Assembly (NCBI GenBank): GCA_001949185.1
Contig: BDGG01000002.1
Span: 4,268,448-4,332,447, forward strand
Direction of reading: 5' to 3'
Origin: Ramazzottius varieornatus
Taxonomy: Eukaryota; Animalia; Tardigrada
DNA: 64,000 nucleotides
A program made the position numbers and the translations under genes. Under the pieces are notes generated by a model that worked only from the letters and a program-made list of their open reading frames with translations, searched no databases and was not told the origin of the DNA. This document shows, piece after piece, positions 3,379-58,032 of the stretch. How positions within the stretch are numbered: position 1 is the stretch's first letter; every line of letters begins with the position of its first letter.

Positions 3379-6300
3379 TCAGCTTGGAATACTGCTGATG
3401 TCCACGGTCACAAATGGGTGATTCAATAGCTTGTCGGCCTTCCATCGAGATTCGGCCTTATTCTGGAAGCAACGATCCAGGAAATCGTTTGCATCTGCAC
3501 TGAGATGCTCTGGAATCTTAGGACGGCCGCCCCCACCAACCTGTGCACACCGATCAGTCAGACTCCGATACAGATATACATGGAATGAATTATAATGCTT
3601 CAATGTTGGATCGTACATGAAACATGATGGCGAAGTCGTTTTCTTCCTTGTCGAACTTTGGAGTTTTTCCTGAAGGTAACAAATACAACGTTCATCATTG
3701 ATGTACTAGAATATCTTCCCGTCATTACGGCAACAGGCAAGTAGTTCTTACACTACACCGAGCATCTACACTCGCATAATCATTGCACTACTCTCGTCAC
3801 TCCTATCCAAGTTGAATTACGGCTGCTTTACCTGTGATCATCTCCACCACAACACATCCCAAGCTCCATATGTCGGTAGCTCGTCCGATGGCGGTGTCAC
3901 CTCGAATCATTTCCGGCGACATGTAGCGGGGCGTTCCCGTGTTGGGCGTGATCTCGTTGGTGGCAGTGTTGTTTGGATCTTCCAGCTTGACCATCTCGCT
4001 GAAGTCTCCCAGCTTGACTTGTCCAGCGGAAGTCAGAAAGACATTCTGGCCCTTGATGTCCAAGTGGCAGATGCCATTCTCATGCAGATACGAAATACCC
4101 AGAAGTAGCTGCTTGGTATACACGCGAACCTGCAAGCACAAACTCAGTTAGATTCAATGGCCGCAAGTATGCAGGTACTTGAAGTGACGTACCATGATCA
4201 TGTCCAGACCTTGTCTTGCCACCTCGCTCAGAGTACCACCTGAAATATAACACCATTACAACACACAAAAAAGGAACAATCTGAAAAGTTCACTGGTTCA
4301 ATCGTTTACCATCACAGTATTCCATGAAGAGCATCAGTTCATCGCGATGAATTTCCACACCGAAGTATTGCACCACATTTTGGTGCTGAAGTCCAGCCAA
4401 CCATTCGATTTCGGTGGCCAGCTTCGTTACTCGTTCCGCGTAGTTTGTCTGATTTACTTCGAACTTCTTGACAGCCATCAGGCTCGAGGTCTCGAGATTT
4501 ATTACCTTGTAAACATCTGCATGGCGACCTGAGCCCAGCTTACCGCACAGCCGCCACTTGAACGGCACCTTTCTCGCTTTGAGATGATTCAGCGTCTTTG
4601 TGCTCTCCGTAGCCACCACACGACCCACGGCCTTCTTCTCGATTAGTTTCTGGTTGAGCCTGTTATCCAGCTTCTCCGTTGCCTGCAAATACAAACACTA
4701 AAGGCATCAATAATAGTTAACTTCAAGCCCCCGCATACAAATGAGTATTGAATTTCAGTGAGCTGGTGTACGCAGGTGCATGAGAAGTCCATCACAGTAT
4801 TATTTACATTTTTGAATATTCGGTGAATTTTCATGTTTTACCTCTTCTATACGATGGTGTGGATCGTATGATTCCGAGTCGTCTTCTTCAGAAGACTCAC
4901 AAGAGACCGTGTCGCTCTTGGAGGACATGCGCGAAGGTACGCTGAGCAGGGCGGAATCGGTGAAAGACAGGGAATGGCGGTGCAAAGATAGGCTACTCTG
5001 AGGGGGACTGAGATAGAACGTAGACGAGTTGGGGCTTTCTGTGGGAGACTTGACACCTGGCGCTGGCGTGTCACCAATGACATGTGTGACACAGGTGTCA
5101 ATCTGGTTCTTTAAGGAAAGGAAGTCCTCGTCGGAAAGGTATCGAGTGTAGTTGGGCTTGACGGCCAATGTCAGGTAGTCCAGACCGGGAGTGGACCATC
5201 GTGGCCTGCAAAAACAACTTCCATGACAGATCTATATTCCATTTCTTGAGGGAGACACGTCCTGACCGGGTGCCGGTTCCGCGTTCGCATTTTTGGATGA
5301 CAAAGTCCATCCATTGACGGGCCAGAAAGGTTAGCTGTCTAGCTAGCATTTCTTCTTCGCTGAAATTCAACCGGGCTAGCTCTCTATGATACTCCATGCA
5401 GAAATTATAGGTCTGATGCAGAAGTTCTCGGGAAGTCTTGACAAGAAGACTGCGCTCCGACTCTGCGATCTCGGGAAACTGTTCCACCCCAATCTCATCC
5501 TGAACACGGAGAATCACCGTGCAGATCTTCCGCCCCAGCTCAAGCGATTCTTCCTGCAAATGCAAAACATCCACAAAAGTCTAGTCGAAATATAGTCAGC
5601 GTAAACACGTGAGCAAACTCGCCAAGATTGTATTCCCAAGTGGCGCACGCTGTCAGTGTTAATAGCTGGACACGTGAGCCACTAGGAAATAACGATCCTG
5701 TTGAGTTTACTCGCCTGAGTAACTTATTATTTTCGATGAAAACAGTACCAACCTTGATGTTCTCTAAATCTTGGGAAATGCCTTGATGGCACGTGGTCTG
5801 CGGAATAGCACTTTTGACGCTATCTCTTGGTAGTTTCTTCTCGAAAGCCTTCGTCTGCGCGCCCAAAGCCACGCTCTTCAAAACCACGATCATGATATGC
5901 CCAATATCCAGCTCTAAATGACTATGTCTGATCGCGCCTGTCGCATCCGCGTCCAGCTTAACCGTCTTTCCATGCCAAGCATCTGGACAGTCAGGCCCAA
6001 TGACTAGGTATCCATCAATATCCCCATCGGTCTCCCGCGTCCCCATCGTGGCGTTCAGCAACCGACGAGCGGCGGATGCGGTCACAGTTGATGGGACGAA
6101 GAAGCGAAACTTGCGATCAACGAGCGAGGGGCCACTGTCCACACAGAACACTACTTCGTGATGACCGGAGTTGGCAAGTAAGTCAAGGAACTCGTCCCAC
6201 TTGCAGGTGACGTCGAACCTGCAAAGCCAAGTAAACTAACTTGAGCGACCAATTGTACGCCGGTGTTTCGAGCAAAACTGCTAATTACGTCGCAGCGATC

Positions 6301-9300
6301 TCCAGGTCCTTGTGCAAAAGCTTGGTGAACTCAAGAAGTTTGAAACAACGCTCACGAGCTTCCAGAAAGACTGCTTTACAATCACGGAAGAACTGACGGA
6401 ACATGTCTTTGGACGGAGACAACCCATTTGCTCCTTCTTCGCTACCTGCAGGAAACAGAAAAAACGTCAAGTTAATCAGAGCAAAAGCTTCGACAAATAG
6501 CTACGTCCTTGCCGCACCCAATAAGAACCGATTTGCTGTATGCAGAATCATGAAAGATCCCTACAAGTCTTGAGAAACCGTAAAAAGAAGTGGAATCGTG
6601 AACCGTGCACGCGCCTGCATACACCTATCGCATTATACAATCGCGACTTAAGGTATGTAAGTGCGCGAAAGCTAAGCTCGCCAAAGCAAAAAGGACCAAG
6701 ACCAAGAGTCTCACTGCGGAGGATCCTTACGATAGAGAGAGGTAATGAAATCGTCCAAGCCAGAATCCAACAAGCCGCCAATGCCGGTCAAGAGTCCTTG
6801 TACGATAGCACAAAAGACTTTAGGCATTTCCACTTCGGCATCGTCGATGCCTCCACACAAGACGGTCATGGTCTTCCACTCATCCTCCAGGATGGTCTTT
6901 TGTAGGCGGCTAGCTTTCGGGTCCTTCTGCAACGTGACTATCCACAGGTGAAGGTACTCTAGATACAGCATCAACAGTTTCTTCATCAAGTCATCCAATC
7001 CTTTCAAGTTCGAGGCTAGAACATTGTGGTGTTGCAGGCATGAACCCAGTTCGATGTAGTCGTTGCGTATGTTGATGGCCAAAATTAGGGTATCCTTGCA
7101 CTCGTGGATCAACTGGTTCAGCGTGGCAATGTCCGATTCAGCTTCCGGTTTCTGCTCCAAACGGAGAACGATGCCTTCTTTTAGGATCTGCATGGGCAGA
7201 CGCAGCATGTAGGCGAAGACTCGGTCCAGACAGGGCAGGTTCGAGTCACGGTGAAGATCGCACCATAATTTGACGATATCCACGCTTTTCTCTGCAAACG
7301 ACACAATATTCGTCACGTTCGGAAACTCGCTTGTTGAAGCTTTTAGTAGAATAAAAGAGAAATACTATATCTATCAAAAGGAAACCTTGGCAAAGAAATC
7401 CGATAAGATCGTTTTTCAAGCGCCGCACTCTATCACCTAATAGCAATGCAAACGTGCGTCACATCAAAAACCAGTCTTTTCGGGTATGTGCACTAAGCTC
7501 CCAAATATCATGAATTATTTGCGTCGGTTCGGTAGAAACCAATAACAAGCGTTCTGTTTTACCTGAAGTTCCAGGTTCCGGAGCGGATGTCTGTCGGTTG
7601 AGAAGCGACCCAGAAACCGGCTGGATCAGGTTCTTCAAGATGTGTCTCAGTGTAGGGAAGATCAGTCCCTTGATCTGCTGTATAGTCTTCTCCAGCCCTC
7701 TCATTCGCATACTCTTCTCCAAGAAGTTCCTAATGGCACCCTGCAGCGCCTGATCTCCCCCACCATTGTCGCGGTTAGTTAGTGCTTCCAAGTCATGAAA
7801 GCTGCTGGCTCTTGAGGAGAACCCCGAGCGCCCACTGTCTATCTCCAGCCCACCTATCCCATCGACCACATCCCCCGTAGCCTCCATATCCAGTTCTTCG
7901 AGAAAAGGACTGGAAAGCGAGACAGGTAAGACCGGAAAGACATCGTTATGCTTGCGACCACAGATGATGCCCGAGACGGCTTGTAACCGGAAGCTCAGCT
8001 GGTTGTAAAAGTTTGTCCACATGATCAGGGCTTTCACCTTGTCCTGGAACTGTGTGCGATCATACATGGCATGCGACAGACCTATCTTCTTTGTAGATGG
8101 GTAGAGATGCTCGACCTCCTCCAGCTGACGCAGAACCTTGCCCACTTCTCGGTAGGCTAGCTGCAGGCAGCGAACATACGAACCGTCGATCTCGTCTTGG
8201 ATGGAGCAAACCAGTGAACAAGGCGCAGCGATATCGGGATCTTCTATTTTAAAGCGCCATATCTGGAAGAGGACCACATTGATCTTCTCACGCTCATTCA
8301 TCAGGAACACGTCGTAGTTATGCATATCCTGGTTATGCATCCATGCCTGGAAATAAAACCCGTCAGAGTTTGGTTGGAAACTTGACACAGGAACTCGATT
8401 AGATCGTTTTCCCAAGAACCCTACACTTTCGTTCTTAATGTTTGAAGGCGTGCGTCACTTGAAAAGACGATCTTGTCGAGTCTCTTCGCTCAGGTCCTAT
8501 TCTGTGATATGTTCTCATAAGTAGATGAACTTGAAGGTAAATCATCCTCGTACGAGCCATACCTGTAGCTCCAGCCAGAGGACGTCGTTCAGCTCGTTTC
8601 TCCACGCTTCCGGTCCGGGCCCCGAGCCATTCTTCCGCAGCTGCTCTTCCCGCTTTCTCTTGGCTTTTGAACCAAGCTCGATCAGCACGGAGAAATACTC
8701 GTAAAATTTAACCCGCTCTCGTGGACAGTTCGGCCATTTAGAAGCTGACCGCGACAAGCTCTGACGACGGAACGTGAAACTCCTCTCGACGTCTGATTTA
8801 GGCTCTTCCTTCTCGAACTTCTCCACAGGACGAGAAGCCAAACTCAGAAAACGGCTGCTTGTTTCCACTTCATACGCCGGTTTCGAGTAGCCTAAATCTT
8901 GCATTGCAACCGCGTGGATCCCTTTGTCGTAAGATTCTGCAGAAAGGAGAGGTTCAAGTTACAATCACACCACTTGCTGTCAAGACAGCACGAGCCGTAA
9001 CTCTGACCACTAGGCCTTGATTCTCTTGTTTCGACCACAAGACGATCTCACCCAGCATGAATCCAACAGTCCAACACACGTGATACTGTAATGCTTCTTG
9101 AATCTCACGCATCTACGTCAAACCACGTGCGCACCATGTAAGTCACTATACCCGTAAAAATGGCGCGCATTATGACGTCAAAGCGTGAGTTCCAAGAAGC
9201 ATTACAGTACTGAAGTAACCAAACAACCAGGAACAAAACAAGCAGCATTCGCGAGACGGACTGTACTGTTTTCAAGTTGAATTCAGAATTTCAGATCTCA

Positions 9301-12162: not shown

Positions 12163-15100
12163 ATGTTGAAGATGTCGCCCAATTTGACCGACCGCCCAGT
12201 TCCTTCTCGATCGGCAGTATACGGTCCTTTTGTCGCGATCGACAATCACTCGGAGATTTTGGACTTCGAATCGCAACTCGGACCAGTGGGGGATTACTGC
12301 GTGGCAGCGTATCTCATAATTATATGTTGGTGCTTTGGTTCTCATTAATTTGATAAAAATGTGTCCGGATGCGTCTCCGGCGGATTTAAATTTTTTCTTT
12401 TCACTTCGTAGGGGTCCTGTCGATATACGCCAATGGAGTGGTCATTATCGGCCTATGTCGTCAAAAGCAGAAACAGTTTGCTCTGGACGTACTCATGGGA
12501 AACCTGGCCTGTTCAAATGGACTACTTGCTTTGCTGACCTATCCTTTCATGGTAATCTCCCTGCTCAAGCACCGCTGGCTCTTTCACCAAATCGGTAAGG
12601 AAATTCGGGCGAAAATACTGTACTAGTGTGTGATACTGACCAGGTACTAACGACGCACGAAGAGTATCACGTTCCCCAGTGAAATCTGACCATTGCTATT
12701 TCGAGATGGGCTGTCCTCGCGCCTCTGATGTGAACACCACACCCTAGGTACCGGAAACACCGTGATTAGTTTGGAACGCGCTCATATATCGCAGCTGAAG
12801 AGAAAACTTTTCGACGACCTCATGCTCAATAATCTCAATTAAAAGCCTAGCATAGTTAGGAACAGGGCCTAAATTTCGTGTGGGTTTTCCCGCTTCCTGC
12901 ATATGCGAGAAGTTGTCGAGGTCTCATGCTAATTGCGCGCACTTCTAACAAGGGAACGGAGGTGACCATGAGAGTATGAACTTCTTCCAACTTTTTCTGT
13001 CGAAAGTACTCGGTCATAGCTACCGTTCAAGTTTACTCTCAGTTGCCACCGAACACCTTTTGGCCAGGGAGAAAATTACGAATGCGTGGAACCCTCTCAA
13101 AACCACCGTGGGACCTCTGACTTCTCGACGTCTACTGGTTCTCGAATCGTCCGAAACATAACGTCTCCAGCAACAAAAATGCATTAGATGAACTGGTNNN
13201 NNNNNNNNNNNNNNNNCACACTCTCATGGTCACCTCCGTTCCCTTGTAAGTTGCACGGTGCCAGAAATCAAGCGATACCGACGAAACCAGACAGTGTAGG
13301 TTTCCTATAGCTCCGAGCTCTCACACGACAAGAATACGGACTGGACAAACCAGCAGATGCACTTCCGGCACTTTGTTGTTTACGGAGGCAACATGATCAC
13401 TTTATTTATCCCCAATTATCTCCGTTGGAGTTCGCTGCATCCGTTGCACATCTTTGTATGGTTCGTTGAATTCGCCTAAATGGATGATGTACAGAAACAG
13501 ACAATATGCAACAAGCGCAAAAACTGCGAGCTTATAAAGCAGAAGCGGATGTGCTAATCAAGGCGGGAATTCTTATAAGAGAAACCATTTCCGCATGAAG
13601 GCAGGAATGTATCCCGAATCAATTAAGACGGATGGACATGGATGAATTCTATATGGGAGCTACGCAAATAACGCCGTAGAAGATGGTTATCTTCAGTGGC
13701 GCACACTCACAGCCAGCAATAACGAAGCGTGCGCCACTTGCAACGGCCATCTTGTACCTTTTGCTTGCCCAGCTCCCATATACTCCACTTTAGCTATTCT
13801 TATGTTTGATCTTCTTTCACAGGTTGTCAGATGTACAGCTTTGTCACGATGTTTTTCGGACTGGTGTCCATCTGGACGCTCCTTGGAATCGCCGGTATTT
13901 TAAGCTATACGATAACAAGCAAGAAAGCTAAAGGTATACTTTGCAATCTCTAAAGATAATTCGCGGGTAAAATCGCTCTTCGGGGACGATGTAATCCCGA
14001 GATCCGACTGAAGATTTCAATGAAAAATCTCGCGGCATCATCAAAACATCCATTAGTCGATGAATTAGGTCTCTAGGGTATCTCAGTCACATCTGTATAC
14101 TGTCCGTAATCCTCACGCGGACAAACTGTATTTTTAGCGGCGAAAGTTCTGCAGCAGCGTCAGCAACGCCATTGGTGTGCCCGCTTCCTCATTATAATCC
14201 ACCTCATTGCCGCCTTTTTCTGCATCCTTCCGCTGTTTGACATCGGCCGGTACGGACCTGGAAAGCATGGGACCAGCTGTACCATCGCATGGAAGCACAA
14301 CGACACGACATCCACCATCTACATTACCTTTCTCATGGCGGCGGGGTTCTTCACGCCCCTTCTTGGCACAGCCTTGTTCTACTACCGGATTACGCACGTG
14401 TTGTTCTCTGTGACGAAATCCGGGGACGTCTCTGCTCAACGTGCTAGGGCGCGAAGGTGGATGGCGGTGAAGCGAAAGAACTTGATGGTATTAAGCTTCT
14501 TAGAAAGATATATATGACGAGGCGTGCTTGTAAGCATGAATAACTAACTTCATAAGACGAACTTACGTCACGAACGTTTACCGCTTCGTTCGATCAGAAA
14601 CGTCTGCTTTGTTCCAGATGAGTACCGCCGTGTGCGTCTGCATGCTGGTATGCTGGACTCCATACTCCGTTGTCGCGATGTGGGAGGTAAAAAAGTATTA
14701 ATTGGGACGTCAGCAGACGACTGGAACAAGAACGTTTCCCTAAGTGACGCACACTTTCAGCCAACCACATTAAAAACCTCCGCCACCGAAAGATAACGTC
14801 CATGTTCAGTTCATTTGCTGACACCCCAATTGGTTTACAATTTTAGCCGATGATAATTTCGATATATCGGATTTACTCTTTTACAGACGTACGGGGATGC
14901 TGCCGCCCTTCCGATGGAAATGGAAGCAGCGTCTGCGCTCCTGGCCAAAAGCTCCACAGCCCTTACTCCTCTGGTCCATCTGTGGTTCGCCAAGAAGTTT
15001 CGGCGCTGGTTGCGGGTCTTCATCTGCTACTCATGCACAGAAATGAGGCATGTGGAACCGGAAGATCTCGAGCAATCTTCGCTTATGCTGAAACCGCGCT

Positions 15101-15249
15101 TGTCCACAAACGACATCGACCGACCGCGATTATTTTCTAAACGCTTACTCAGGGTGAATTCTGTAGCCTCAGGTGTCTTTCACAAACGCACCTTTCTCAC
15201 TTTTGTTGATATTGTGGTGAACGAACCAGTAGTCGCTAATAGTGTTTAA
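12163..15249 (+). CDS. Atypical group-4 opsin (neuropsin/Opn5-like), about 412 aa; exons 12163-12325, 12412-12594, 13823-13933, 14138-14487, 14618-14686, 14887-15249
   Basis: Manual splicing gives an open 7TM frame: DFESQLGPVGDYCVAAYLIIIWVLSIYANG, NLACSN, HRWLFHQIGCQMY, GRYGPGKHGTSCTIAW, CWTPYSVVAMW, LLAKSS (K296 equivalent at 14947-14949). The exon 3 donor could alternatively be about 13894. Confidence 0.85.
12949..13246. mobile_element. Non-autonomous DNA transposon with CAAGGG termini and 3-bp TSD (TAA), spanning an N gap, in opsin intron
   Basis: TIR CAAGGGAACGGAGGTGACCATGAGAGT at 12949 and its reverse complement ending at 13246; TAA at 12946-48 and 13247-49. Confidence 0.85.
13198..13216. 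other. Assembly gap (N run)
   Basis: Run of n. Confidence 0.99.
13678..13756. repeat. Family A palindrome in opsin intron
   Basis: AGTGGCGCAC-N24-GTGCGCCACT. Confidence 0.85.
14724..14806. repeat. Family A palindrome (degenerate) in opsin intron
   Basis: AAGTGACGCAC-N25-CTCCGCCAC. Confidence 0.65.
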
Positions 15250-19546: not shown

Positions 19547-22500
19547 ATGCCTGATGCGGTAAAATCTTCCCCGAAGCTGCGATTCTCGTCTTTGGAGGCT
19601 CTGGAACAGGCAGCGGAAGTCGATAAGAAGAAGCCCCAGACATCTGACGTCAAACAGTACGTACCCGTAGATAGATAGATTTATTGAGCCTCGACAATCT
19701 AGTCGACGGCTTCCTCGATCGTCAGAGGATAACGAAACATAAAAATACAGTACTTACAGTATCATAGGGATATATTATGCAGAATACGATGGACAAGATT
19801 TAATGTACTATAGAACGGTTGAAGGAAGTTGACAGCAAGGGAAATTGGACACTTTATAACTGTGTGTGGGTTGTAAACTTTGTACAACGTTCCTTACGTG
19901 TTATCTTCTAATGTTCTTGCAGGTTGGAGAAAGTTTTACCCAAGTTGGATCTGTTGCTCAAAGATGCTCGGCTGAAAGGAGACGACGAGACGACTTACAT
20001 TGTGGCTAGTCGTTATTTTGATGTCTTCAGAACCATCCACAGATCGAAGAACAAGAACGACACTGTAAGACTGGCGTCTTCATCAAGTTGATGTTCTTCA
20101 TGATGCTATTACACGAGTCGCGTCTGCCGAATACGCTTATGGAAATATCTGGTGTTTCAGGCCTGGTACAGCAGGTATACACATCCAAAAGAAGCGTTGC
20201 AGCTACTGGAAAGCTTGAAAGAAAGTTTGGCGCTAAGGTAATCGAACTGTCAGAACTGTTGTATGATTTGAGAATTAACCACTGTATAGTCATCTCGCTA
20301 CGATCGAATTGTACCGCCAGTCGCATTGCAACTTCTTTTCATTCTTAGATATAAAGCAAATAGTCAGACGAATGGGTTTAGAACTCCCACGGAAAGAGGG
20401 GAGAGTCCGGTTCAACCGAACGGTTACACCGTCTATCAGTCGAACAGCGTCACTACCGAAAAGAAGCATAAAGATTTACCAGCGAAGGACACGAAAGATC
20501 CGTCGGAAATAACAGCCAAAGATCTGAACAAGCTGCTCAAGACCAACGAAGCTTCCGTCTTGCTGCTCGACCTTCGGAGTGAGGAGGAGTTTGAGAAGAG
20601 CCATATTACCTGCAAGAACATCATCAACCTTCCTCAAGACAAAATCGAAGGGTACGCGTTACTTATCCAGTCGGTACTGGCAGGAATGCAGATCGCCATC
20701 CCTTACCATAACTTTATCTTTAGGAAGCTGACAGCTACCATGATCGAAAACATGATTGATACACCCTACAAAGCCGCCTGGCGAACCAGACAGGTCTTCG
20801 ACAAAGTCGTCATCATGGATGGAGGTAACACCAGACTGTTCGAGTCAGCGGCAGTCAAGAACCTGACCGCAGTCCTGATCGAGGTTTGTGTTCTTCCATT
20901 CTCGTATACTTTGTTTAGCGGAAATTGTTGTAGTCGTGCGTCATTAGGGACGGATTTGGGTGGTAGGCAGACGTCCTGTGGTCGTTTCATACACCTGCAT
21001 GCATATTAGATCCTGCTTGCAACCGAGCCTTGTGTATGCAGGTGAGGGAGGGGAGTGTCCAGTATTATTATCATGGAGTTTCAGCGTCACGAACCTGCAT
21101 GCTTATAGCAGTCTTGTAACCGTAAACAAGTGTACATGCGTGAGAAAAGTTGACTAGCATTTTCGGATAACTACCCTAATCGATGTATAATTTCAGTTTT
21201 CATCGGAGCCCATCAAGTCACGTCCGCTGTTGCTGACCGGTGGCTTTTACGGCTTTAACACCAGCTTTCCTCACCTAACATCCGACCCGCACTACAGAGC
21301 TCCTCGTCAAGAAAACACCAGGCTGCGAAACCTGGCAAATATTCGTTTTCCAACGATGAAGCTCTTCTCCGATGCTTTTGGTGACTATCCAGCAACAGTC
21401 TCCCCCAAGCCCTTCCGCCCGAGTGCTCAACGCTTCGAAAAGCCTACCGATGACTTCCTTCCGGACAAGGACGGCCCTGTCTACATCAAAGACATCTTAG
21501 GTGACGTCCTTCCGAAGATCCAGCACCCAAACAACTCAAGAAGGAGTCCAACACCCGAACTGATTCCACAGCGCAGGTCGGAAGTAATCACCGAAATCCC
21601 GGCAGTTGATAGAGGGTTGAAGCCAAGACAGTCAAACCCGTCCGTTCCTTCCGACACTTCCTTGTCGAGTAACAAGTCTGACAATGGACATGACGCTTTC
21701 ATGGCCAGTAACCACTCGAACAACGGCTATGACGAGGTGGTGAATAGTTCGTACGTGAACCATACGAGAGGATCCGATGAAGATCTGGGAGATTTCTCGA
21801 GTTATGATGACGGTAGAAGTCAAACGTTACCTACAGTCAAGCGAAGCGCTTCAACAATGCCCTCGGTTTCAAGAAATAGCAAGCCTGAATCGACGCAGTC
21901 GAACTCGCGCAATTTTCCGACCAGTAGTGAAGAAAGTTCTTCCCGTCCTGCCTCTATGGATAAGCTACATGAGCGCTCCATCAACGAACAGGGTAAAAAT
22001 ATGCGAATACTAGTCGAAATCACAACATTGTTGAGAATGATTTCTTCTTATTTCAGGCAATTTGGAGGTGCGGAATGTCGATGCGAAGTCATCGACACTC
22101 CCACCGGGTGGAAAGCTTTCGAAAGTTGCGAAAGACGAGTTCTTCGATCCCTCGGTAAAAGTCAGAAATATCCCCATCATCATGGAAAATTCGCCGGACG
22201 TTTCGAAAGCCCCAGCGCAGCCTCCGCAGCCACAACGAGCCCTCAAACCTTTGGATACGAACAGAAGGGTCAGCTTCACCCTACCTGACTATCCGTCGCC
22301 CAGCCAATGGTATCCTTGTCTGGAAAAGCCAACTGTGCGTATCTAAAGTTTCTAGGTGTCAACAGCATTACTCGGTACGATTTGTGGACGATCTGGTTCT
22401 GTTTTACAGGAACCCGGAAGGACGGGTTTGGCGAACTTGGGTAACACCTGCTACATGAGCGGAGTTCTTCAGTGTCTTTCACATACAAAGCTTATACGAA

Positions 22501-55756: not shown

Positions 55757-58032
55757 ATGTCGTCGAAACTGGATCGTTATGTACCACTGGACAGTACGTC
55801 TCTAGAGCGGGCTGGCGACATGATGGAACTTACAGAAGACGGTCTCCATGTGCGAATCCAAGGACTGGTAAGGTCCACACGTGACCAAAGCATTTCGACC
55901 TAAGTACCTTGGCAAGCAACTCGGCAAGATCATTTTACTAAGTGGCGTACGCTTCTGGCCAATAACTTCGATAGTGTGCGCCACTTGGGAAATAATCGTG
56001 TCACGTCGTCTATTTAAGCGGCGCATGCTGCCATCCAGTAACGTGGCGAACACGCGCCACTTGAGAAAGCAACCTCGTCCAGCTTGTGTGAGACTCGCAC
56101 AGTGTGAGCACCTGGTTCACACATGCAGTTTTTTGTTGCCGTTCGAATTTTATCTATATGATTCTTCGTTAGATGGACTGGTGAAGTTTAATGAACTTGA
56201 TCATATTGATTATTTTGTTTGGATTGTAGAATGGGACATACGCTGTCGAGGACCTGATACCCAGTGCTCAAGGACTACACGAGTCCCTCGGAGAAAGTCA
56301 AGTCGTTGTGGTGGTAGTGTTTTACATCTTTGTATCCGTCATTGGCGCTCTCGGCAATGGCCTGGTCCTGTTCACCGTCCTTTCGCGTCCAAAGATGCGC
56401 ATGATGCGCCATGTCTTCATCTCAAACCTCGCCGTTTCTGACTTTATCCTGTGTGCCATCACGACGCCTTTTACTTTGGTAGGTGACGACGGTTCATTTA
56501 TGCTAGGCCAACTTGGGCTCGTGTTGAGAGGTGTCACGCCCGAAAGAGCTGCTTTGCCCAGAGTTCTTTGGCTAATCCCCGCTTCTGGCATGTGCTCAAA
56601 ACGACAAGGGAAGCTTGACAAGCCTGGAAATGAATGATTCACTTAAGCAAAAAATGTCCTGTTAATCGCTTTAGTGCACTCAATATTTGTTGGCCTGAAG
56701 GTCAATCAAGCGGCCTTCGGGGTTGGGCATCGATCCACAACAAAACCTGACATGACAGAAACACATCCATCTAACTTGATTAATTATTTTGAGGATAACT
56801 TTCTGAGCGCCTCGTTGTGACGCGTCAAGTTTTTTTAGCTTGTCATTTGAGGATCATCAAAAATTTCTATAGTCATTATGAGCAGCGACAGGCATAAATA
56901 AAGTGGGATCGTCATTAGGGTCGGCTGGGCAAGAACAAATTTATTTCTCCATAAATGGGACGTCGGCGAATGAAGTGCACATGGCCAATTATCTCTAGTG
57001 GCGCACTTTTCCATGTTACTGGCCATAAGTCTGCGCCACTTGGGATAACGGTTGTGCTCAAGTCATTTGGCGACGTCCCAAATGCTGATCACGCTCAGTA
57101 CTCCATATGATACATGTTTTGTACTTTTGCAGTTGGAGGTTCTCGGAAGTCCCATTGGAACTCTTGGCATCATGTGCCAGATTATACCAGCACTTCAAGC
57201 CACCAGCGTGTACGTCTCCACCCTCAGCATCACCGCCATCGCGCTCGAACGCTACAAAGTCATCGTTTACTCCGTCAACTCCACGTCCAGCCGCAAACTG
57301 CTGATGGGATTGCTGGTGGGGTTCATCTGGTTCTTGTCGTTGGCTCTGTCCATGCCGTTCATCGTCTTTCGAACTCGAGTGGCTTTCGGCATTCCCAAGA
57401 TCCGCCTGACGTACAAGTGCACGGAAGTGTGGCCCGTTCCCTATGGCCGCGCCCTCTACAGCATCTTCTGCATGGTTTTTCAATACTGTATGCCCAGTTT
57501 CATCATTGGTGCCGCCCATATTCGCATCGTTCTGAAGCTCCAGCGAAGATACATGAACCGGGAAGAACAGACGCAGGGACCTCACAGCAGCAACGGTCAT
57601 AGTTCTCATGTCGACGAGTCAGAAGTGATGGAAGTGCTCAGAGGGCGAAGGAAGAAGCAACGACGCCGCCAAGCTCGCACTAACCAACTCCTGCTGCTCA
57701 TCTCAATCATTTTCGCCTTGTGTTGGTTACCGCTGAATGTAATCAATATTGTGGCGGACTTCAGCACGGACTCGTACACGGAGCATCGAACCCTATTCGA
57801 TGTCCTCTTCGTGGGTTCCCATCTCTTCGCCATGAGTTCGGCAGTGGCGAACCCGATTTTGTATGGATTCCTGAATGAGAATTTCAGAAGAGAATTCAAG
57901 GTGATTTTTCTGTACTGGCTACGCTGCATTTTCTGCGGGAAGACGTTTGGATTCGATAAGCCATCCGAGGTGAAAAGAGGACCGCAAACGCTAGCCAGTT
58001 CGCGCCATCATGCAGAGCTCACAGTTTTGTGA
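55757..58032 (+). CDS. Neuropeptide F / NPY-like class A GPCR; exons about 55757-55867, 56230-56478, 57133-58032
   Basis: GNGLV, NLAVSD, TPFTL, ATSVYVSTLSITAIALERY, CTEVWP, FALCWLPLN, HLFAMSSAVANPILYGFLNENFRREF. Confidence 0.88.
55922..56080. repeat. Family A palindrome, tandem pair, in NPF receptor intron
   Basis: AAGTGGCGTAC-N25-GTGCGCCACTT and AAGCGGCGCAT-N25-ACGCGCCACTT. Confidence 0.85.
56983..57052. repeat. Family A palindrome in NPF receptor intron
   Basis: AGTGGCGCAC-N24-CTGCGCCACT. Confidence 0.8.

Follow-up and report, generated by a model that had tools for sequence, protein, structure and literature searches.

A neuropsin-clade opsin of Ramazzottius varieornatus with the retinal lysine kept and the counterion and class A activation residues replaced

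The window analysed here, a stretch of 64,000 nucleotides from contig BDGG01000002.1 of the tardigrade Ramazzottius varieornatus, carries an opsin gene at 12163-15249 (+), with six exons, a coding sequence of 1239 nt and a product of 412 aa. Its spliced translation has zero internal stops and GT-AG sites at 5/5 introns, and is identical to GenBank QYF06551.1 at 412/412 residues, which bears out the six-exon open frame proposed in the initial annotation. A genome search located all six exons in the R. varieornatus genome itself, where the public annotation divides this one opsin gene into two models, RvY_04875-1 and RvY_04876. The features of the locus are given below, with residues in bovine rhodopsin numbering, as called from a HMMER alignment and a residue table.

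12163..12325, +: exon 1, with the start codon, an extracellular N-terminus bearing NxT/NxS sites and the beginning of TM1
12412..12594, +: exon 2, TM1-TM2-ECL1 (Pfam 7tm_1, 7.9e-09)
12516-12518, +: codon of N83 in exon 2, followed by T90 and Y91 (HMMER alignment, residue table)
12595..13822, +: intron 2, containing an assembly gap and a 34-nt inverted repeat
12945-12978 and 13217-13250: arms of the 34-nt inverted repeat, in intron 2
13198-13216: assembly gap (N run) inside intron 2, adjoining the right arm of the repeat
13823..13933, +: exon 3, TM3 with C110, Y113, G121 and W126
13897-13908, +: DRY-equivalent I-L-S-Y in exon 3, without Arg
14138..14487, +: exon 4, TM4, ECL2 hairpin and TM5 (Pfam 7tm_1, 2.2e-10)
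14260-14271, +: codons of G181-K182-H183-G184 in exon 4, then S186 and C187
14618..14686, +: exon 5, TM6 with the CWTPY motif (W265, P267, Y268)
14887..15249, +: exon 6, ECL3, TM7, helix 8 and C-tail, with the stop codon at 15247-15249
14923-14925, +: conserved Glu at K296 minus 8, in exon 6
14947-14949, +: K296, in exon 6
14965-14979, +: TPLVH, in exon 6

The assembly gap falls within the gene span, where the annotation also has its two models, and could suggest that our model has a missing or wrong exon, or joins two genes. Such an artefact is extremely improbable, since the gap is intronic and leaves the reading frame unaffected, the introns hold no further opsin-like exon, and the model matches, residue for residue, a 412-aa record deposited separately (possibly itself a gene model). 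The exon 2/3 junction is supported by this identity across the junction, by the gap-free alignment of orthologues over it, and by an intron at the same position in a paralogue on contig C3. An alternative exon restoring the DRY motif was also considered and rejected, as no exon carrying [DE]R[YFW] is found in any + frame of introns 1-3.

The best PDB sequence matches of the protein are squid rhodopsin (3e-22), jumping-spider rhodopsin and bovine rhodopsin. The AlphaFold2 model (pLDDT 81.4) has seven transmembrane helices, helix 8 and an ECL2 beta-hairpin, and its top Foldseek matches are squid rhodopsin and jumping-spider Rh1; as modelled, the protein has an opsin-type class A 7TM fold. Two characters of an animal (type II) opsin are present, namely this fold with helix 8 and the ECL2 hairpin, and a lysine at 296.

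The gene represents R. varieornatus in the published eutardigrade 'neuropsin' clade and is probably a group-4 opsin related to Opn5. Three published phylogenies put its orthologues in neuropsin (PMC4202329, PMC8350360, bioRxiv 10.64898/2026.04.15.718617). In our tree, which contained no sequences of RGR, retinochrome, Go-opsins or vertebrate peropsins, the tardigrade clade (support 100/100, on a long stem branch of 1.2) is joined to sequences named Opn5, to the exclusion of chelicerate peropsins, with moderate support (81/82). In the ESM Atlas, the closest clusters are opsin-5-like, and the initial description of the gene as intact and neuropsin-like is supported by the published orthologues, the tree and these clusters. 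Homologue searches gave 2 matches with QYF06551.1 as query and 4 with an alignment as query, while the matches of a third search were nearly all vertebrate Opn5-like proteins. The R. varieornatus genome contains three loci of the clade, with paralogues ~38% identical.

Compared with bovine rhodopsin, the protein keeps K296 (K313 of the protein), C110/C187, W265, P267 and Y268, and retains an opsin-like pocket (G121, W126, S186, F212, W265 and Y268). The changes are D83N, E113Y, E181G and D190A, the replacement of NPxxY by TPLVH (T302-P-L-V-H306), and a DRY site without Arg. The remaining positions read from the alignment are T90, Y91, M94, Y113, K182, H183, T188, A190, W191 and A292, and there is no carboxylate at 94, 113, 181 or 292. 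The E181-P182 pair is G181-K182 in this opsin, which places a lysine next to the former counterion site. Features of the Opn5 group are absent, both Glu181 (G181 here, and G/A/T in ten clade sequences) and D2.50, E/DRY and NPxxY (N83, I-L-S-Y and TPLVH).

The HMMER alignment bears out the residue calls made from the sequence at the outset (K296, C110/C187, Y113, W265, P267 and Y268 kept; 83, 181, 190 and NPxxY changed), and confirms that the lysine is kept while the counterion and activation motifs are lost, a combination that extends to the whole clade. Two of the calls depend on how the residues are aligned. The DRY site had been read as L-S-Y, which is obtained only when one TM3 residue is gapped; in the ungapped alignment, with G121 and W126 in register, it is I-L-S, and Arg is absent either way. 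The reported change of W161 to His holds in an ungapped count from P171, whereas the HMMER alignment has Leu at this position. The two Glu noted before TM7 are present (protein residues 303 and 305), although the relatives share just the latter, which lies at K296 minus 8.

N83, the lack of R135, [G/A/T]181-K182-H183, the Glu at minus 8 and xPLVH recur in relatives from Hypsibius and Paramacrobiotus and in environmental fragments. In the residue table, N83, T90/Y91 and the absence of R135 are common to 4/4 full-length clade proteins, and the ECL2 signature [GAT]181-K182-H183 occurs in ten clade sequences. The Glu is present in 6/6 sequences with a readable TM7, and xPLVH in 5/6. K296 is invariant in the clade, as are W265, Y268 and the disulfide across genera, and position 292 is A or S. 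The non-tardigrade sequences of the table have E/D at 181 in all but one case (S181-E182).

Conservation within the clade is uneven along the protein. The clade alignment has 41% invariant positions in the extracellular half and 27% in the cytoplasmic half, with 0% in ICL2 and ICL3 and 75% in the cytoplasmic half of TM7; helix 8 is also well conserved. Conservation peaks in the retinal pocket and ECL2 and is lowest in the G-protein-contact segments. When identity in these contact segments is divided by that on the extracellular side, tardigrade pairs give 0.49-0.69 and similarly divergent pairs of vertebrate Opn5-like sequences give 0.86-1.08, in a comparison of few and non-independent pairs; chelicerate peropsin pairs have values as low as the tardigrade ones (0.61-0.64), which means that the measure is not specific.

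This pattern argues for function rather than decay as the origin of the derived residues, since the changes are shared by relatives across the clade. A decaying or unexpressed gene with an accidentally open frame would be in line with the divided public annotation, the premature stops found in many H. exemplaris neuropsin transcripts (bioRxiv 10.64898/2026.04.15.718617) and the low published expression of tardigrade opsins. A Ramazzottius neuropsin is reported as low-expressed (PMC8350360, a paper citing egg, juvenile and adult RNA-seq of BioProject PRJNA369262), a value that is not assignable to one locus because the genome has three. Decay is nevertheless very unlikely, as 412 codons are open over five GT-AG introns, the derived motifs are kept between genera at ~46% overall identity, conservation is regionally patterned and not uniform, and the R. 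varieornatus terminal branch is short (0.4).

Opsin biochemistry presumes that a carboxylate at 94, 113 or 181 serves as counterion and that the class A activation switches are present. The sole characterised wild-type exception that we found in the literature is the coral ASO-II group, with a chloride counterion (PMC12401545). From its residues, we consider that the R. varieornatus opsin may be a pigment that binds retinal with its Schiff base unprotonated, absorbs in the UV/violet and has a non-canonical output, either photoisomerase-like or through atypical signalling, our preferred reading, to which we give a probability of about one half. Without a carboxylate at the four sites, and with the new lysine at 182 beside the old counterion position, the Schiff base would most likely be unprotonated, which would give a UV/violet-absorbing pigment. 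Opn5m is UV-sensitive (PMC10432815), and the coral opsin Antho2e is UV-sensitive through a positive charge (R113) near the Schiff base (PMC12401545).

With regard to the output, D2.50, R3.50, W4.50, N7.49 and Y7.53 are all replaced throughout the clade, and canonical G-protein activation is probably absent given these replacements and the poor conservation of the contact segments. The protein would more likely act as a retinal photoisomerase, as a retinoid-handling protein or by signalling via another partner, and such a partner could be served by the cytoplasmic half of TM7 (PLVH), which is highly conserved. RGR and retinochrome, which are held to be photoisomerases, also have derived NPxxY motifs (PMC9368030). 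However, the analogy is only partial, because retinochrome, the model photoisomerase, has the E181 counterion that the R. varieornatus protein lacks. Moreover, GPCRs with a non-standard NPxxY can signal (PMC9368030), and the suggestion that the protein is non-signalling has to be tempered, because ASO-II opsins with similar losses, of E(D)RY and of three counterion sites, still give light-dependent Ca2+ responses (PMC12401545).

These coral opsins also make it possible, though somewhat doubtful, that the tardigrade protein is a G-protein-coupled photoreceptor with an unconventional counterion, either an anion such as chloride at K182/H183 or the Glu at minus 8, by which a protonated Schiff base would be stabilised in one or both photostates. 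ASO-II opsins without Glu/Asp at 94/113/181 use Cl- (PMC12401545), human red/green cone pigments bind Cl- in the same loop via His181 and Lys184 (PMC9923458), and the recurrence of K182-H183 and of the Glu in the tardigrade sequences, together with the conserved helix 8 and cytoplasmic TM7 half, is consistent with such a role. Nevertheless, ASO-II opsins depend on a Glu at 292, where the tardigrade clade has Ala or Ser, the tardigrade Lys/His are at 182/183 and not 181/184, and the conserved Glu would lie two turns from K296 by helix geometry. The loss of D2.50, N7.49 and Y7.53 and the variable G-protein-contact segments also speak against conventional coupling. A light-independent role (chemosensory, thermosensory, structural or as a chaperone), with the lysine kept for non-photochemical reasons, would agree with the loss of switches and counterion and with the report of He-neuropsin in midgut and storage cells (bioRxiv 10.64898/2026.04.15.718617), and such opsin functions have been discussed (PMC9368030). 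It is unlikely, because the conservation is highest in the pocket and ECL2, with K296, W265, Y268 and the disulfide unchanged between genera, which is the pattern expected from chromophore binding.

Returning to the retinal-binding pigment with a non-canonical output, its interest lies in the combination found in this clade, where the counterion and every canonical switch residue are gone and the retinal pocket is conserved. If these proteins bind retinal, they would form a naturally UV-only pigment, supply a second, independent example of a counterion other than a carboxylate, or make up a new lineage of photoisomerases. With any of these outcomes, the reported '100+ opsins' of tardigrades would have to be reread as retinoid handling or atypical signalling rather than as a large set of photoreceptors. 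Hypsibius is said to have a greatly expanded set of these genes, with expression in gut and storage cells; the R. varieornatus gene, from a three-member family and with its full coding sequence now defined, is a convenient test case. More speculatively, and with rather low confidence, this may be a bilaterian opsin clade in which the E181 site became a Lys-His site, with an anion counterion or none (the latter UV-only in both photostates), and in which light is transduced via PLVH/helix 8 without canonical G-protein activation; if true, the Opn5 family would include a novel mode of photochemistry and signalling.

The clade, the gene, and the loss of NPxxY with K296 kept in tardigrade neuropsins were already known. 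He-neuropsins keep K296, lack NPxxY and have T90/Y91, and they are reported to be expressed in the brain and also in midgut and storage cells, with internal membrane stacks as a possible location (bioRxiv 10.64898/2026.04.15.718617). In the tardigrade opsin papers that could be searched, E181, DRY, D83 and W161 are nowhere described as lost, nor is the signature of K182/H183 and the Glu at minus 8 noted. The named tardigrade neuropsins (Hypsibius exemplaris Hd/He-neuropsin-a/b, Paramacrobiotus neuropsin and 'Ramazzottius neuropsin') share K296, T90/Y91 and the absent NPxxY with the gene described here, and the H. exemplaris 'putative Opsin-5' proteins and P. metropolitanus XP_055337649 are 45-46% identical to its product. 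The R. varieornatus gene has six coding exons, whereas five are reported for the He-neuropsin genes (bioRxiv 10.64898/2026.04.15.718617), and the three loci of its genome contrast with a claim of at least 72 homologues for H. exemplaris.

Beyond tardigrades, the nearest named relatives by the tree and the ESM Atlas are the neuropsins (Opn5), UV-sensitive bistable group-4 opsins coupling to Gi or Gq. The R. varieornatus opsin resembles them in Y113 and in H183-G184 ahead of the ECL2 cysteine, as in invertebrate Opn5-like sequences, but canonical Opn5-like sequences retain D83, E181, W161 and NPxxY, none of which it has. Its likeness to RGR and retinochrome, taken from published descriptions, is the retained lysine with a derived NPxxY (PMC9368030). 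The substitutions differ, being NAxxY, VPxxY or YPxxY in RGR/retinochrome (PMC9368030) and TPxxH in the R. varieornatus opsin, as does the residue at 181, the Glu counterion in retinochrome and Gly here; RGR is found on internal membranes, a location speculated for He-neuropsin (bioRxiv 10.64898/2026.04.15.718617). The coral ASO-II opsins share the lack of Glu/Asp at 94, 113 and 181 and of E(D)RY (PMC12401545), which corresponds to M94, Y113, G181 and no Arg135 in R. varieornatus. In ASO-II, however, Glu/Asp292 lies one turn from K296, whereas the R. varieornatus opsin has A292, and the two belong to distant lineages, anthozoan (cnidarian) and tardigrade. ASO-II opsins have been shown to signal through Ca2+ (PMC12401545).

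The opsin gene at 12163-15249 (+) was read from the DNA and spliced locally, which gave six exons, GT-AG sites at all introns, and a coding sequence of 1239 nt that encodes 412 residues with no internal stops. Searches were run per exon, and full-length searches used the GenBank record QYF06551.1, which matches the spliced translation at 412/412 residues. The intact six-exon frame with GT-AG sites described in the initial annotation is thus borne out.

12163-12325, + strand: exon 1 of the spliced model
12412-12594, + strand: exon 2 of the spliced model, with 7tm_1 (Pfam)
12595-13822, + strand: intron 2, holding an N run at 13198-13216
13823-13933, + strand: exon 3 of the spliced model
14138-14487, + strand: exon 4 of the spliced model, with 7tm_1 (Pfam)
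14618-14686, + strand: exon 5 of the spliced model
14887-15249, + strand: exon 6 of the spliced model

Orthologue alignments cross the exon 2/3 junction without gaps, and in a paralogue on contig C3 an intron falls in the same place as intron 2, just ahead of the C110 codon. With five relatives as tblastn queries, the six known exons are the sole matches at the locus, and no [DE]R[YFW] triplet occurs in any + frame of introns 1-3, so that neither search gave other exons restoring DRY, an outcome that would have counted against the initial annotation. The N run, an assembly gap, falls inside intron 2 and has no bearing on the reading frame. An inverted repeat of 34 nt (arms 12945-12978 and 13217-13250, complementary at 94%) has its right arm directly beside the gap, and two more nested inverted repeats are found at 13650-13782.

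The genome's own annotation is wrong at this gene, for which it holds two models, RvY_04875-1 (125 aa) and RvY_04876 (194 aa), both identical to parts of the opsin. The former continues beyond the splice donor of exon 2 into the intron, the latter takes a Met inside exon 4 as its start, and exon 3, with C110 and the DRY equivalent, is missing from both. In addition, GenBank lists QYF06551.1 as 'ciliary opsin [Milnesium sp.]' despite its full identity to a R. varieornatus neuropsin-clade gene. Species and opsin class in this label are probably a mix-up or contamination, which could touch the published claim that Milnesium has c-opsins and no neuropsin.

The upstream neighbour (~4300-8400, −) is a MEKK4 (MAP3K4) N-terminal-domain gene and the downstream one (20326-21009, +) an ORF with a rhodanese-like domain; no retinoid-metabolism gene is found among these adjacent neighbours. 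Further along, at 56236-58000 (+), another class A GPCR, unrelated to the opsin, looks by its sequence like a neuropeptide receptor and not an opsin: its NLAVSD, CWLPL and NPILY motifs are canonical, and Met stands where opsins have the lysine.

Residues (bovine rhodopsin numbering) were called from a HMMER alignment to bovine rhodopsin and from a 34-sequence alignment, and all the calls made earlier by eye hold. The opsin has N83, T90, Y91, M94, C110 and Y113 in TM2/TM3; G181, K182, H183, G184, S186, C187, T188, A190 and W191 in the ECL2 region; and W265, P267, Y268, A292, K296 and T302-P303-L-V-H306 in TM6/TM7. The DRY equivalent is L-S-Y with a one-residue gap in TM3, or I-L-S in the ungapped alignment, which holds G121 and W126 in register, and Arg is present in neither. 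The W161 counterpart is H counting from P171 and L in the HMMER alignment. Among sequences of solved structure, the protein matches squid rhodopsin best (3e-22), followed by jumping-spider rhodopsin-1 (7e-15) and bovine rhodopsin (~4e-14), with peptide and amine receptors slightly behind. An AlphaFold2 model built on the 34-sequence alignment (mean pLDDT 81.4, helices >90) has seven TM helices, helix 8 and an ECL2 hairpin, and among solved folds it comes closest to squid rhodopsin and jumping-spider Rh1. A short helix predicted at residues 395-407 of QYF06551.1 (window ~15203-15241) may act as a signal for trafficking or for binding a partner.

When exon 4 was run by HMMER against 1.8 billion representatives, only eight proteins came in at <1e-10. 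Three named relatives are full-length: a pair from H. exemplaris, annotated 'putative Opsin-5' (393 and 405 aa), and one from Paramacrobiotus metropolitanus (377 aa), automatically named peropsin by NCBI; each has 45-46% identity to the window protein. The next matches are canonical group-4 opsins, among them peropsin 1 of Limulus and the Opn5-like proteins from vertebrates, a barnacle and a hemichordate. In a maximum-likelihood tree of 27 sequences, drawn from a set without RGR, retinochrome and Go-opsins, the tardigrade clade has support of 100/100 and a long stem (1.2), is nested in the group-4 set (80/88), and groups with Opn5-named sequences apart from chelicerate peropsins (81/82). This placement is tentative with that set. 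It and that of the ESM Atlas, where the closest named clusters are opsin-5-like, are in line with the published trees, three of which assign the orthologues to the neuropsins (PMC4202329; PMC8350360; bioRxiv 10.64898/2026.04.15.718617), and the term 'neuropsin-like' is supported.

We compared ten clade sequences, of which four are full-length proteins, five are fragments and one is the C3 paralogue. Each of them has [G/A/T]181-K182-H183 in ECL2, and the five with readable TM7 (the four full-length proteins and the paralogue) share Glu eight residues before K296, Glu(-8), and [T/V/A]-P-L-V-H. Between the two Glu before TM7 (MEMEAAS) noticed initially, the second is conserved in the clade and the first is not. 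The four full-length proteins also have N83 and T90/Y91, with a hydrophobic residue or His at the R135 position. Position 181 is Glu/Asp in every non-tardigrade sequence of the residue table, with the exception of one annelid (S181-E182), and because it is [G/A/T] followed by K182 in the clade, the aligned sequences indicate that an ancestral E181-P182 is replaced there by a neutral residue and Lys. H183-G184 is common to the clade and invertebrate Opn5-like sequences. The R. varieornatus genome (G000; 55.8 Mb, 200 contigs) has only three clade loci. Beside the gene in the window (G000:C2:4268448-4332447), the other two are:

G000:C3:4077172-4078223, + strand: C3 paralogue (L002/L006), ~35-47% identity to the window gene
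G000:C2:2948152-2949506, − strand: third, more divergent locus (L003/L007)

The C3 paralogue has fewer introns than the window gene and carries N83, G181-K182-H183-G184, CWTPY, Glu(-8), K296 and TPLVH. The third locus keeps K296, E181-R182 and Glu(-8), with CRAPS replacing CWxPY and TPVAQ replacing NPxxY.

Among the four full-length tardigrade proteins, 41% of positions are invariant in the extracellular/pocket half versus 27% in the cytoplasmic half. No position is invariant in ICL2 or ICL3, against 10-28% where TM3, TM5 and TM6 end on the cytoplasmic side and 75% in the cytoplasmic half of TM7, the most conserved segment. Dividing identity in G-protein-contact segments by identity on the extracellular side gives 0.49-0.69 for tardigrade pairs and 0.86-1.08 for Opn5-like pairs from vertebrates with comparable overall identity; two chelicerate peropsin pairs give 0.61-0.64. 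With so few pairs, which are moreover not independent, the ratio is supportive only. The open 412-codon frame, the motifs kept between genera at ~46% identity and the region-specific conservation argue against a decaying gene.

The window gene was already in GenBank and the clade has been published since 2014; Hypsibius exemplaris neuropsins were reported to retain K296, to have T90/Y91 and to be without NPxxY (2026 preprint, bioRxiv 10.64898/2026.04.15.718617). In two tardigrade opsin papers searched by term, neither 'counterion' nor 'E181' nor the DRY motif comes up, and a search of the available literature found no paper linking counterion, opsin and tardigrade. On this evidence, the new part is the clade-wide loss of E181, DRY, D83 and W161, along with the signature of K182/H183 and Glu(-8).

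Retinal binding is suggested by the lysine, the disulfide and the pocket residues, all of which are retained. The established counterion sites are 94, 113 and 181 (PMC12401545), and the opsin has no acidic residue at these or at 292, while the new K182 adjoins position 181. A positive charge at 113 was proposed to give coral Antho2e its UV sensitivity (PMC12401545), and Opn5m is a UV sensor (PMC10432815). On these grounds the Schiff base would be unprotonated, with UV/violet absorption. D2.50, R3.50, W4.50, N7.49 and Y7.53 are all lost, and together with the relaxed conservation in G-protein-contact segments this makes canonical G-protein activation improbable. RGR and retinochrome, with a derived NPxxY, are regarded as photoisomerases or as regulators of retinoids that sit on internal membranes (PMC9368030), and H. 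exemplaris neuropsin has been reported from midgut and storage cells, where internal membrane stacks may carry it (bioRxiv 10.64898/2026.04.15.718617). Based on these likenesses, the favoured reading is that the opsin has a photoisomerase or retinoid-handling role, or signals via another partner, with a probability of about 0.5.

Alternatively, an anion may be held by K182/H183. We consider this less likely, and still a live rival, because the loop concerned is also where red and green cone pigments bind chloride, via His181 and Lys184 (PMC9923458). The ASO-II coral opsins, like the window opsin, are without E(D)RY and the 94/113/181 counterions, yet they use chloride and still signal (PMC12401545); they do so, however, with E292, where the window opsin has A292. 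The photoisomerase reading also has its limit among known systems, as retinochrome needs E181, whereas the window opsin has G181.
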